Below the pieces are notes generated by a model. That model did no database searches. It had not been told where the DNA came from and saw only the letters and a program-made list of their open reading frames with translations. A stretch of DNA of 64,000 bases from Macrostomum lignano (taxonomy: Eukaryota), in assembly GCA_002269645.1 (NCBI GenBank), contig NIVC01003444.1, positions 33,261-97,260 on the forward strand. The letters run 5' to 3'. The translations under genes and the position numbers were made by a program. Below are positions 1 through 7,717 of this stretch, piece after piece (within the stretch, counting starts at the first letter, position 1; each line of letters starts with the position of its first letter).

Positions 1-3000
1 ACGACGAAGGCGTCGGTCTGTTTAGGTTGAATGGAACAGGCGAAGACAGACGCAAGTAGTTCAACTCAGAGGTGGCGTAACCGCCAAGCTGGGTTCCGTT
101 GAGGATGCGCATTGCTGATAACGGAATCACGGTCTCGTCAGCCAGACCATCAAAATCAATGCAAATTCCAGGTTGAGTAGTTGTTGCCGTCGTCGTTGTC
201 GTTGTCGTTGTCCTAGGAGTAGTAGTGGTGCTCGCTGTTGTTGTTGTTGTTGTGCTGGGCGTTGTTGTTGTCGGCGTAGTTGTAGTTGTGCTCGGTGTCG
301 TGGTAGTTGATGTTGTTGTTGTGCTCGTTGTGCTTCTCGGTGTTGTTGTCAGCTTTGTGAAGCAGCCTAGCATGCTGACTTGAATCGGGATCCTGTTACC
401 GCCCTCGTTTTTGAAATTAAAAACCAGAGCGATTCGATAAGCTTCCAAGCCCAATCCACCAACAGAGGCGCACGAGATGAAGTCGAACATGCAGGTGGCT
501 ACTTCAGCGGCACCGACAGCCAGTTTGACTGAAGTGAATGGAGACACCGCGTCTGTTGCATACTTTAGCTCCATTGACGTAATGAATCCTGGACTTGTCG
601 TTGAAATCGATATTAGTCCGATGATCGAGTTACTAAGATCGTCTCCGCTGACGTTGAAATCGAACTGAATGCTATCCGTTGCTGTCGACGGTGTTGCCAC
701 ACGGTTTATATTCAGTCCTGTGCTAGTCGGACGCAGCAGGTCGTACTCGGACGTCGGAATCAGTCCAACGCCCTGAGTGGAGGCGCTCACCGTGATGTCG
801 CTCACACTTATTATGCTGCTGTCGGCCATGAGATTTGTGTCAAGACAACGAGTGAAGCTTGTAGTCGACTTGCTCTTCACGCCTTCTGTAGTGGTAGACG
901 TGCTAGATGTCGTCGTTGTCGTTGTCGGCGTAGTCGTGGTCGACGTCGTCGTCGTCGAGTTGTTGTAGTAGTAGGCGTTGTCGTAGTAGTGGTAGGCGTT
1001 GTCGTAGTAGTCGTCGGCGTTGTCGTAGTAGTCGGCGTTGTCGTAGTAGTCGTCGGCGTTGTCGTAGTAGTGGTAGGCGTTGTCGTAGTAGTCGTAGGCG
1101 TTGTTGTTGTTGTGGTAGGCGTTGTCGTAGTAGTCGTAGGCGTTGTTGTTGTTGTGGTGGTGGTTTGTGTCGTCTTTTGTGGGAAGCAGCCATATATTCC
1201 GATCTGTATGTCAACAGAATTCCGATCGGTCACTGAATTGTAGAAAATCTCAAATCGCATCACCGTCGAGTTGATGGTCGAAGGCGTCGGCGGGATGCAG
1301 GCAAGCAGATTTGACTTGCACGCGGTGAGGTTCGCGCCAGAGAAGAAGTAAGTGTCCCAGGTGACTTGCGTGTACGTCTGCTTATTGTACAACCGCACAG
1401 CCTGAATGTCAGGAGTGTTGAAAGCGAGCTGGATCCGACCGACAATGGTGGCTTCTGGACTGCCTGCAGACGTTTCAATTTCAATCAGGATGTTCTCGTT
1501 CGGATTGGCAAACGACGAAGGCGTCGGTCTGTTTAGGTTGAATGGAACAGGCGAAGACAGACGCAAGTAGTTCAACTCAGAGGTGGCGTAACCGCCAAGC
1601 TGGGTTCCGTTGAGGATGCGCATTGCTGATAACGGAATCACGGTCTCGTCAGCCAGACCATCAAAATCAATGCAAATTCCAGGTTGAGTAGTTGTTGCCG
1701 TCGTCGTTGTCGTTGTCGTTGTCCTAGGAGTAGTAGTGGTGCTCGCTGTTGTTGTTGTTGTTGTGCTGGGCGTTGTTGTTGTCGGCGTAGTTGTAGTTGT
1801 GCTCGGTGTCGTGGTAGTTGATGTTGTTGTTGTGCTCGTTGTGCTTCTCGGTGTTGTTGTCAGCTTTGTGAAGCAGCCTAGCATGCTGACTTGAATCGGG
1901 ATCCTGTTACCGCCCTCGTTTTTGAAATTAAAAACCAGAGCGATTCGATAAGCTTCCAAGCCCAATCCACCAACAGAGGCGCACGAGATGAAGTCGAACA
2001 TGCAGGTGGCTACTTCAGCGGCACCGACAGCCAGTTTGACTGAAGTGAATGGAGACACCGCGTCTGTTGCATACTTTAGCTCCATTGACGTAATGAATCC
2101 TGGACTTGTCGTTGAAATCGATATTAGTCCGATGATCGAGTTACTAAGATCGTCTCCGCTGACGTTGAAATCGAACTGAATGCTATCCGTTGCTGTCGAC
2201 GGTGTTGCCACACGGTTTATATTCAGTCCTGTGCTAGTCGGACGCAGCAGGTCGTACTCGACGTCGGAATCAGTCCAACGCCCTGAGTGGAGGCGCTCAC
2301 CGTGATGTCGCTCACACTTATTATGCTGCTGTCGGCCATGAGATTTGTGTCAAGACAACGAGTGAAGCTTGTAGTCGACTTGCTCTTCACGCCTTCTGTA
2401 GTGGTAGACGTGCTAGATGTCGTCGTTGTCGTTGTCGGCGTAGTCGTGGTCGACGTCGTCGTCGGAGTTGTTGTAGTAGTAGGCGTTGTCGTAGTAGTGG
2501 TAGGCGTTGTCGTAGTAGTCGTCGGCGTTGTCGTAGTAGTCGTCGGCGTTGTCGTAGTAGTGCGTTGTCGTAGTAGTCGTAGGCGTTGTTGTTGTTGTTG
2601 TTGTCGTAGGTGGTTTTGTTGTCGTCTTTTGTGGGAAGCAGCCATATATTCCGATCTGTATGTCAACAGAATTCCGATCGGTCACTGAATTGTAGAAAAT
2701 CTCAAATCGCATCACCGTCGAGTTGATGGTCGAAGGCGTCGGCGGGATGCAGGCAAGCAGATTTGACTTGCACGCGGTGAGGTTCGCGCCAGAGAAGAAG
2801 TAAGTGTCCCAGGTGACTTGCGTGTACGTCTGCTTATTGTACAACCGCACAGCCTGAATGTCAGGAGTGTTGAAAGCGAGCTGGATCCGACCGACAATGG
2901 TGGCTTCTGGACTGCCTGCAGACGTTTCAATTTCAATCAGGATGTTCTCGTTCGGATTGGCAAACGACGAAGGCGTCGGTCTGTTTAGGTTGAATGGAAC

Positions 3001-6000: not shown

Positions 6001-7717
6001 TGGAACAGGCGAAGACAGACGCAAGTAGTTCAACTCAGAGGTGGCGTAACCGCCAAGCTGGGTTCCGTTGAGGATGCGCATTGCTGATAACGGAATCACG
6101 GTCTCGTCAGCCAGACCATCAAAATCAATGCAAATTCCAGGTTGAGTAGTTGTTGCCGTCGTCGTTGTCGTTGTCGTTGTCCTAGGAGTAGTAGTGGTGC
6201 TCGCTGTTGTTGTTGTTGTTGTGCTGGGCGTTGTTGTTGTCGGCGTAGTTGTAGTTGTGCTCGGTGTCGTGGTAGTTGATGTTGTTGTTGTGCTCGTTGT
6301 GCTTCTCGGTGTTGTTGTCAGCTTTGTGAAGCAGCCTAGCATGCTGACTTGAATCGGGATCCTGTTACCGCCCTCGTTTTTGAAATTAAAAACCAAGCGA
6401 TTCGATAAGCTTCCAAGCCCAATCCACCAACAGAGGCGCACGAGATGAAGTCGAACATGCAGGTGGCTACTTCAGCGGCACCGACAGCCAGTTTGACTGA
6501 AGTGAATGGAGACACCGCGTCTGTTGCATACTTTAGCTCCATTGACGTAATGAATCCTGGACTTGTCGTTGAAATCGATATTAGTCCGATGATCGAGTTA
6601 CTAAGATCGTCTCCGCTGACGTTGAAATCGAACTGAATGCTATCCGTTGCTGTCGACGGTGTTGCCACACGGTTTATATTCAGTCCTGTGCTAGTCGGAC
6701 GCAGCAGGTCGTACTCGGACGTCGAATCAGTCCAACGCCCTGAGTGGAGGCGCTCACCGTGATGTCGCTCACACTTATTATGCTGCTGTCGGCCATGAGA
6801 TTTGTGTCAAGACAACGAGTGAAGCTTGTAGTCGACTTGCTCTTCACGCCTTCTGTAGTGGTAGACGTGCTAGATGTCGTCGTTGTCGTTGTCGGCGTAG
6901 TCGTGGTCGACGTCGTCGTCGGAGTTGTTGTAGTAGTAGGCGTTGTCGTAGTAGTGGTAGGCGTTGTCGTAGTAGTCGTCGGCGTTGTCGTAGTAGTCGT
7001 CGGCGTTGTCGTAGTAGTCGTCGGCGTTGTCGTAGTAGTGGTAGGCGTTGTCGTAGTAGTCGTAGGCGTTGTTGTTGTTGTGGTAGGCGTTGTCGTAGTA
7101 GTCGTAGGCGTTGTTGTTGTTGTGGTGGTGGTTTGTGTCGTCTTTTGTGGGAAGCAGCCATATATTCCGATCTGTATGTCAACAGAATTCCGATCGGTCA
7201 CTGAATTGTAGAAAATCTCAAATCGCATCACCGTCGAGTTGATGGTCGAAGGCGTCGGCGGGATGCAGGCAAGCAGATTTGACTTGCACGCGGTGAGGTT
7301 CGCGCCAGAGAAGAAGTAAGTGTCCCAGGTGACTTGCGTGTACGTCTGCTTATTGTACAACCGCACAGCCTGAATGTCAGGAGTGTTGAAAGCGAGCTGG
7401 ATCCGACCGACAATGGTGGCTTCTGGACTGCCTGCAGACGTTTCAATTTCAATCAGGATGTTCTCGTTCGGATTGGCAAACGACGAAGGCGTCGGTCTGT
7501 TTAGGTTGAATGGAACAGGCGAAGACAGACGCAAGTAGTTCAACTCAGAGGTGGCGTAACCGCCAAGCTGGGTTCCGTTGAGGATGCGCATTGCTGATAA
7601 CGGAATCACGGTCTCGTCAGCCAGACCATCAAAATCTATGCAAATTCCAGGTTGAGTAGTTGTTGCCATCGTCGTTTTAGTTGTAGTCGTTTGACAGTCC
7701 TTTTCGTCAGTTTGGTC
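1..7717 (-). repeat. Coding tandem repeat, ~1.5 kb (~500 aa) units, just over 5 copies in window
   Basis: The marker acgacgaagg recurs at 1, 1512, 2964, 4458, 5970 and 7480 (periods 1511, 1452, 1494, 1512, 1510). Units are nearly identical except for the number of 18-bp PTTTTT repeats. Confidence 0.97.

Follow-up and report, generated by a model that had tools for sequence, protein, structure and literature searches.

A stretch of 64,000 nucleotides from contig NIVC01003444.1 (positions 33,261 to 97,260 of the forward strand; the whole stretch is referred to as the window, and all coordinates are given within it) was analyzed with respect to a giant repeat-containing exon located at its beginning. 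The region probably represents the 3' part of a gene that encodes a giant secreted glycoprotein of the gel-forming mucin type. The gene would be the counterpart of the gene for the Macrostomum lignano protein A0A1I8GJ02 and a paralogue of the gene for the glue protein Mlig-ap2; its product would serve as mucus or secretion matrix rather than as glue, and the interruptions of its reading frame would be errors of the genome assembly. The initial annotation of the region had described a beads-on-a-string mucin, and this description is supported by the globular, Cys-bounded domains that alternate with linkers of 67-74% Thr behind a head composed of VWD, C8, TIL and LDLa domains.

The terminal exon and its repeat array

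The gene is located on the minus strand and runs from approximately 22.3 kb, a limit deduced from a signal-peptide-like start at position 22297, to beyond base 1 of the window. About 21 exons were counted. The deduced protein comprises roughly 1,650 residues in the N-terminal head and about 2,560 residues in the visible array, and the length of more than about 4,200 amino acids proposed earlier is considered a fair estimate. The visible part of the terminal exon covers positions 1 to 7717 and contains the end of the last LDLa module, followed by an array of alternating domains and linkers that extends past base 1. An acceptor AG (7719-7718) precedes the exon start at 7717, and the reading frame is carried over from the previous exon, the donor GT of which is located at 7825-7824. 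The first codons of the terminal exon (DQTDEKDC) finish the LDLa module that is opened by CDGKQDCQ in the previous exon. Since the exon starting at 7717 thus completes an LDLa module behind an AG acceptor, the coordinates of the initial annotation were right. All long stop-free stretches between positions 1 and 8200 are located on the minus strand. A bacterial-style reading in open reading frames (ORFs) was rejected.

Two types of beads, named A and B, make up the array. Each unit consists of bead A (165 amino acids), linker 1 (about 113 amino acids, 74% Thr), bead B (162 amino acids) and linker 2 (66 amino acids, 67% Thr). At least 10 linkers are visible; they contain 9-11% Pro, the tract of linker 1 is built on PTTTTTT, and together they represent the long Pro/Thr/Ser-rich region that characterizes a gel-forming mucin. 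Starts of domain A (GICIDFDG) were found at positions 7648, 6138, 4626, 3132, 1680 and 169, which yields five full units of 1510, 1512, 1494, 1452 and 1511 bp as well as a sixth unit that is cut at the window edge. The order of domain A, Thr tract, domain B and second Thr tract in more than five units had been recognized before, and the motifs quoted for it were found again on translation. Unit 1 (6139-7648, like all units on the minus strand) is composed of A (7648-7154), linker 1 (7153-6815), B (6814-6331) and linker 2 (6330-6139). The reading frames of unit 2 (4627-6138, with A at 6138-5644, linker 1 at 5643-5305, B at 5304-4819 and linker 2 at 4818-4627) and unit 3 (3133-4626, with A at 4626-4132, B at 3810-3325 and a linker 1 that is 18 bp shorter) are intact. 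Unit 4 (1681-3132) carries A at 3132-2638 and B at 2357-1873 and lacks 33, 5 and 21 bp in linker 1, unit 5 (170-1680) carries A at 1680-1186 and B at 847-362, and the first 56 codons of A in unit 6 occupy positions 1 to 169. Further bead copies were not detected elsewhere in the 64-kb window.

The pairwise DNA identity between the units ranges from 99.3 to 100%, units 2 and 5 being free of any substitution, whereas A and B share only 24.6% identity over 171 amino acids (pairwise E 1e-9). The domains had been called diverged, which applies to the comparison of A with B but not to the copies of the unit. Because the units are near-identical and the two beads are far apart, the unit can be traced to an ancient duplication of a single bead type and to recent amplification. 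The near-identity of the 1.5-kb units suggests that unequal crossing-over or gene conversion has acted on them recently.

The assumption that the giant exon forms a single open frame was not borne out, as at least five small insertions or deletions (indels) of 1, 2 and 5 bp break the frame. The frame switches at about 6724, at 6395, at about 2561, at 2260 and at 956. Single-base deletions near 6724 and 6395 place about 110 codons of bead B in unit 1 out of frame, including a stop codon. In unit 4, the loss of 5 bp near 2561 and of 1 bp at 2260 shifts the intervening frame, with a stop at 2416, and in linker 1 of unit 5, 2 bp are inserted near 956 and 3 bp are missing near 1034, which changes the frame. 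The differences between the units are mainly small indels at short runs; only two isolated substitutions were found, and the other mismatches are located in the rearranged linker of unit 4. An explanation of the frame breaks by introns was rejected, since the breaks are indels of 1-5 bp.

Domain composition of the N-terminal head

The limits of the head exons were set by tblastn with A0A1I8GJ02 (UniRef100_A0A1I8GJ02, in the following P0001) and by splice sites, and their translations were searched with Pfam. An EGF-like domain, three VWD-C8-TIL sets and LDLa modules were detected; the VWD/LDLa head reported previously was thereby confirmed and extended by EGF, C8 and TIL domains. Such N-terminal VWD-C8-TIL sets characterize gel-forming mucins and polymers of the von Willebrand factor type, and three of them are present here.

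The likely 5' end of the gene spans positions 20039 to 22297 on the minus strand, as do all features of the head described below. It includes the candidate start codon at 22297, followed by a putative signal peptide that was recognized by eye, an exon at 21036 encoding QLSLQTYIR, and an EGF-like exon within 20039-20383 (EGF_2, 27 bits). An EMI domain may be present near this end of the gene. The first set of VWD, C8 and TIL domains (57.0, 55.1 and 40.5 bits) is encoded at 15718-19401 by exons within 19162-19401, 18415-18714, 17414-17818, 16810-17184 and 15718-15939. The second set (65.5, 23.9 and 28.4 bits), together with a VWC-like stretch, is located at 12253-15433 in exons at about 14933-15433, 14001-14204, 13300-13545 and 12253-12711 and shows 54-84% identity to P0001. 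VWD 3 (103.1 bits) and C8 3 (59.4 bits) at 10274-11768, with exons at about 11619-11768, 11341-11520 and 10274-10927, reach 77-82% identity to P0001. The head is completed by TIL 3 (42.6 bits) and the LDLa modules (Ldl_recept_a, 34.1 and 101.8 bits, 3 stretches) within 7826-9473, where exons are located at 9048-9473, 8496-8615, 8204-8326, 7986-8120 and 7826-7917. In total, four LDLa stretches were detected by Pfam, and a fifth, split across the last two exons, was read by eye. Frame breaks are absent from the 4-5 kb of coding sequence of the head. The C-terminal region lies beyond base 1 of the window, and a VWC/CTCK or TSP-1 tail would be located outside the visible sequence.

Almost all introns of the head (9561-22078) are filled by a long micro- or minisatellite, including arrays of the 4-bp units TGAT, TCTA and AGAC with lengths of 470-840 bp and arrays of 16-bp and 23-bp units of 400-820 bp. 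Simple repeats account for most of the gene length.

A related protein of M. lignano

When 1.84 billion representative proteins were scanned exhaustively with HMMER, P0001, annotated as 'VWFD domain-containing protein' of M. lignano, was the sole relative of beads A and B (E 1.3e-23). Both proteins share a collinear head of VWD-C8-TIL and LDLa domains with 48-84% identity per exon. In P0001, a B-like bead (52% identity) follows straight after the LDLa modules and precedes an A-like bead and Thr tracts, whereas the first bead of the window gene is A. The UniProt model of the uncharacterized protein P0001 is, moreover, fragmentary, with a tail that probably represents a frame-shifted Thr tract. 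The window gene can be considered an orthologue-like counterpart of A0A1I8GJ02 on the basis of these sequence comparisons; the two are not the same allele but derive from different species or from divergent copies. The similarity to P0001 assigns the window to a macrostomid-like flatworm.

A protein identical to the product of the window gene was not found in the databases. Word-indexed searches of 5.8 billion proteins yielded no match with a query of A plus B and none with a head-exon query, although P0001 is 82% identical there; the latter result therefore reflects a sensitivity gap of the word index and is not evidence of absence. The sole match of a profile of seven bead sequences in the word-indexed search was a fragment of Mlig-ap2, which already belonged to the query family.

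The low-complexity C-terminal tail of P0001 (residues ~1545-1680), which is rich in Asp, Asn and Tyr (…NVDNNHDVDYDNAAVDHNYY…), looks like an out-of-frame Thr tract. Similar sequences are obtained from the Thr tracts of the window at 2416-2560 and 880-960 upon a slip of the frame. The database model of P0001 is probably frame-shifted and truncated.

Relation to the adhesive protein Mlig-ap2

M. lignano attaches by means of two giant proteins, of which Mlig-ap2 (14,794 amino acids, GenBank MH586845) binds to the surface (Wunderer et al. 2019, PMC6410801). The protein carries Gal-beta(1-3)-GalNAc, and its knock-down abolishes attachment; it contains N-terminal vWD, TIL, C8 and LDL domains, 21 repeats of 255 amino acids followed by 25 repeats of 221 amino acids, and TSP-1 repeats at the end (PMC6410801). 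Inspection of the repeat sequences provided in the supplement of that study showed that each repeat joins a module of about 145-155 amino acids, bounded by a Cys on either side, to a subsequent linker rich in Thr, and that the LDL modules are separated from the array by several more diverged modules of this type. Ap2-like proteins were described for five more Macrostomum species in 2021 (PMC8621496).

The architecture of the window gene had been regarded as undescribed, with an ortholog of the same repeated architecture named as the result that would speak against this view. As Mlig-ap2 shares the repeated architecture, with 46 Cys-bounded modules and Thr-rich linkers behind a VWD/TIL/C8/LDL head published in 2019, the claim fails by its own standard. 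In both proteins, beads follow directly after the LDLa modules, and a giant array is built in tandem from near-identical beads, each a Cys-bounded module that measures about 145-165 amino acids. Along 1089 collinear residues, the head of ap2 is 26.8% identical to P0001 (E 1e-82), and the ap2 N-terminus is likewise collinear with the head of the window gene, with 23-57% identity per exon-sized match and E-values down to 6e-18. Accordingly, the head of the window gene family is homologous to that of ap2. The nearest M. lignano relative of the window gene is, however, A0A1I8GJ02 and not ap2, which indicates that the window gene is a paralogue and not an orthologue of ap2.

Clear differences were also observed. 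The ap2 array is composed of two homogeneous repeat blocks, whereas A and B alternate strictly in the window. Modules of ap2 are basic (isoelectric point 9.5, 30 Lys plus Arg per module), whereas the beads of the window are acidic, with isoelectric points of 4.5 for A and 4.2 for B. The ap2 linkers, which are O-glycosylated, contain 34-36% Thr and 16-22% Lys/Arg as compared to 67-74% Thr in the window linkers, and two VWD domains were reported for ap2 as compared to three detected by Pfam in the window head. The two arrays share their design, but the basic, Lys/Arg-rich repeat motifs RP-1 and RP-2 of ap2 were not recognized in the sequence of the window array. Neither repeat of ap2 matched the window by tblastn at E<=1, and HMMER gave no signal between the beads and the ap2 modules. 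The function of ap2 was demonstrated by RNA interference (RNAi), whereas the window gene is known here from its sequence.

Evidence for expression and a possible role

The footprint proteomics table of M. lignano lists a 2625-amino acid, MUC5B-like, VWD-containing transcript (PMC6410801), and seven of its nine quoted peptides, including bead peptides, are exactly contained in P0001. The peptide QLSLQTYIR encoded by the window exon at 21036 is also among the footprint peptides, and a peptide of the footprint transcript RNA1509_11446_1 (RNA815_290.1) closely matches domain A. These matches indicate that the M. lignano counterpart is translated and was recovered from the material left on the glass. 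A search of the transcript names in the papers and in the positional RNA-seq supplements revealed nothing on the tissue expression of the M. lignano transcripts.

The earlier proposal of a mucus or bioadhesive component is supported by the presence of the M. lignano relative in the footprint data and by the homology of the head to that of Mlig-ap2. When ap1 and ap2 are knocked down together by RNAi in M. lignano, all adhesive vesicles are lost (PMC6410801), which speaks against a third major glue component. This result, along with the acidic beads and the linkers of 67-74% Thr as opposed to the basic ap2, speaks for a mucin of mucus or of a secretion matrix more than for a glue. The product of the window gene is therefore, with moderate confidence, most likely a matrix deposited onto the substratum, distinct from the glue of the tail. 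In the head of M. lignano, frontal glands are strongly stained by the PNA lectin, a marker of the ap2 glycan (PMC6410801, supplementary information, Fig. S6 legend). The counterpart of the window gene, as a Thr-rich mucin, would be a candidate carrier of the PNA glycan in these glands.

Properties and classification of the beads

Each bead contains four cysteines: A has a Cys at position 3 and ends with YGC, B has a Cys at position 4 and ends with LGC, and an additional C-x6-C pair is located within both of them. The Cys residues at both ends that the terminal disulfide of a discoidin domain needs are thus present in the sequence. A Pfam family was not found for A and B (E<=10) or for the related beads (E<=1). 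Single-sequence AlphaFold2 models of A and B are all-beta but unusable, with a predicted local distance difference test (pLDDT) score of 41.

In the initial annotation, the beads had been assigned to the discoidin (F5/8 type C) domains, and a comparison with this family by HMMER or HHpred had been suggested. The assignment passed none of the tests applied, which were Pfam PF00754, a PDB profile search, hhalign and HMMER with decoys, and the comparison of the suggested type gave nothing significant (hhalign P=0.1).

Alternative interpretations

The following points weigh against the interpretation given at the outset. Frame breaks that are real would end the protein inside unit 1, at the first break; the homology between the beads and the ap2 modules is marginal (118 collinear columns were aligned by hhalign with P 0.0026); and the footprint table also lists many cellular contaminants such as HSP60, EF1-alpha and ATP synthase. 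Because cellular proteins share the table, presence in the footprint stands for expression and does not prove secretion or a role as glue. With respect to the frame breaks, the array could be decaying or truncated, so that the protein stops inside unit 1 or the locus represents a pseudogene copy. Five frame-breaking indels within 7.7 kb would fit such a decay, as would the UniProt model of M. lignano, which likewise reads Thr tracts out of frame. A decaying array should gather substitutions as well, yet the units are 99.3-100% identical and contain nearly none, the head exons are intact, and the counterpart protein including bead peptides was detected in M. lignano. Moreover, the indels are located at short runs (TTCCG to TT-CG, GTCCG to GT-CG), as is typical of consensus errors of long reads. 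The published Macrostomum genomes are PacBio/canu assemblies that were polished with Arrow and pilon (PMC10468722). Considering that the differences between the units are dominated by indels and that the coding sequence of the head is unbroken, the frame breaks are probably consensus errors of a long-read assembly within near-identical repeats, and decay of the array is unlikely. Likewise, the gene could be the ap2 orthologue of another Macrostomum species and thus encode the glue by which the duo-gland adhesive organs bind to the surface. The shared plan of a VWD/TIL/C8/LDL head and a huge array of Cys-bounded modules with Thr-rich linkers is compatible with this idea, and in other species most of the ap2 repeat sequence has yet to be assembled and might be different (PMC8621496). 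Orthology to ap2 is nevertheless very improbable, given that the window head is far nearer to A0A1I8GJ02 (48-84%) than to Mlig-ap2 (23-57%), that both genes coexist in M. lignano, that basic modules stand against acidic beads, and that the ap2 repeats did not match the window.

The nature of the beads is a separate question, as A and B might be true discoidin domains that have diverged past detection by sequence, in which case the protein would be a multivalent lectin-mucin. The N-terminal Cys is part of a C..(D)GMA....I....I.VSAS-like motif and the beads end in L/Y-G-C; hhalign pairs the beads over their full length and collinearly with six reference discoidin domains, joining both end motifs; the models are all-beta; and many of the neighbours that Foldseek gave for model A, none of them significant, are jelly rolls of the galactose-binding-domain-like type (CBM32, CBM51, furin P domain, Cry domain III, netrin LN). 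In SCO-spondin, F5/8 type C domains are located near the LDLa cluster, which also counts in favour of this assignment. However, PF00754 (gathering score 28.2 bits) gave no match for A and B at E<=10 or for the beads of M. lignano and ap2 at E<=1, whereas the six reference domains scored 80-117 bits in the run with the related beads. No PDB entry was retrieved at E<=10 by the profile search, the hhalign pairing reached a probability of 0.6% only, the HMMER scores are inside the range of shuffled decoys, and the Foldseek matches of the low-confidence models have E>=0.03 and template modelling scores of 0.3-0.4, none reaching E<=0.001. A discoidin origin of the beads is consequently a serious possibility to which we assign somewhat less than an even chance. 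A more elaborate and rather improbable scenario is that A and B represent a flatworm-specific, cryptic lineage of discoidin or galactose-binding-like lectin modules, perhaps derived from an F5/8 type C domain beside the LDLa cluster of a SCO-spondin-like ancestor. The beads might then bind Gal-beta(1-3)-GalNAc on neighbouring Thr linkers and thereby form a self-crosslinking lectin-glycan gel, and ap2 might have arisen from such a mucin when beads and linkers turned basic.

Proposed working and comparison with known systems

If the gene encodes a mucin-type glycoprotein as proposed, the candidate signal peptide would send the protein into the secretory pathway, and the three VWD-C8-TIL assemblies may drive disulfide-linked multimerization by analogy with von Willebrand factor and MUC2. 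The LDLa modules may bind calcium, as their counterparts in other proteins do. The long exon would provide an extended bottle-brush in which acidic, four-cysteine and presumably all-beta beads are placed between linkers of 66-113 residues that are probably densely O-glycosylated.

Three N-terminal VWD-C8-TIL assemblies are also found in MUC2, MUC5B and von Willebrand factor. In gel-forming mucins, the central Pro/Thr/Ser region is broken by small Cys-containing globular domains and encoded in one very large exon. The interrupting domains of the vertebrate mucins are CysD domains, in contrast to the beads of the window gene, which additionally contains LDLa and EGF-like modules. Both SCO-spondin and hemolectin of Drosophila combine VWD-C8-TIL repeats with one or two discoidin domains, and SCO-spondin contains LDLa modules in addition. 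In comparison with these two proteins, thrombospondin repeats are not visible in the window, and the array is composed of unclassified beads without a discoidin match. According to its domain description, the sea star footprint protein Sfp1 resembles the product of the window gene as a large, secreted protein of adhesive type with VWD, C8 and lectin-type modules (PMC6410801), but it has galactose-binding lectin and EGF modules and is devoid of a Thr-rich bead array.

The architecture of ap2 has been known since 2019 and 2021, and the counterpart of the window gene is present in UniProt and in published proteomics data, where it seems to be uncharacterized. New are the genomic layout of an ap2 paralogue and the strict alternation of A and B in near-identical 1.5-kb units within one exon, as well as the three VWD assemblies and the acidic beads with almost pure Thr linkers. 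The bead family is represented neither by a Pfam model nor by a solved structure. Temporary adhesion of flatworms is a model for reversible underwater glues, and ap2 consists mostly of repeat modules that resist short-read assembly. The window gene provides a mucin-like comparison for the question which property, be it charge, linker chemistry or bead type, turns a mucus protein into a glue. It also supports the derivation of flatworm adhesives from mucus proteins, an idea that has already been raised (PMC6745481).

Other features of the window

A 15-bp minisatellite (CCTGGTGCTGGCGCC) is present at 8746-8992, 27915-28251 and 52730-53313 with 16-39 copies and 97-99% matches, one of the arrays being located inside an intron of the mucin-like gene. 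A 28-bp minisatellite forms two arrays (22949-23625 and 25267-25552), and the segment of roughly 1.6 kb enclosed by them could be a mobile element whose ends bear repeats; the minus-strand ORFs of about 100 amino acids in this segment (24703-25297) had no Pfam match. On the plus strand, an exon at 35273-36013 encodes a potassium-channel pore and the start of a cyclic-nucleotide-binding-homology region (Pfam Ion_trans_2, 34.9 bits); the sequence is presumably very close to ERG/KCNH-type channels, and its open frame runs on into a CTGACACCCTCA minisatellite. Also on the plus strand, positions 60097-60618 contain what is left of a transposase of the mariner type (Pfam Transposase_1, 42.6 bits). 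Additionally, kilobase-scale purine-rich arrays of GGGAGAGG-type units occupy positions 29522-31901 and 53760-57475, where the GC skew reaches up to 0.72 per 2 kb and long spurious ORFs are created on both strands.

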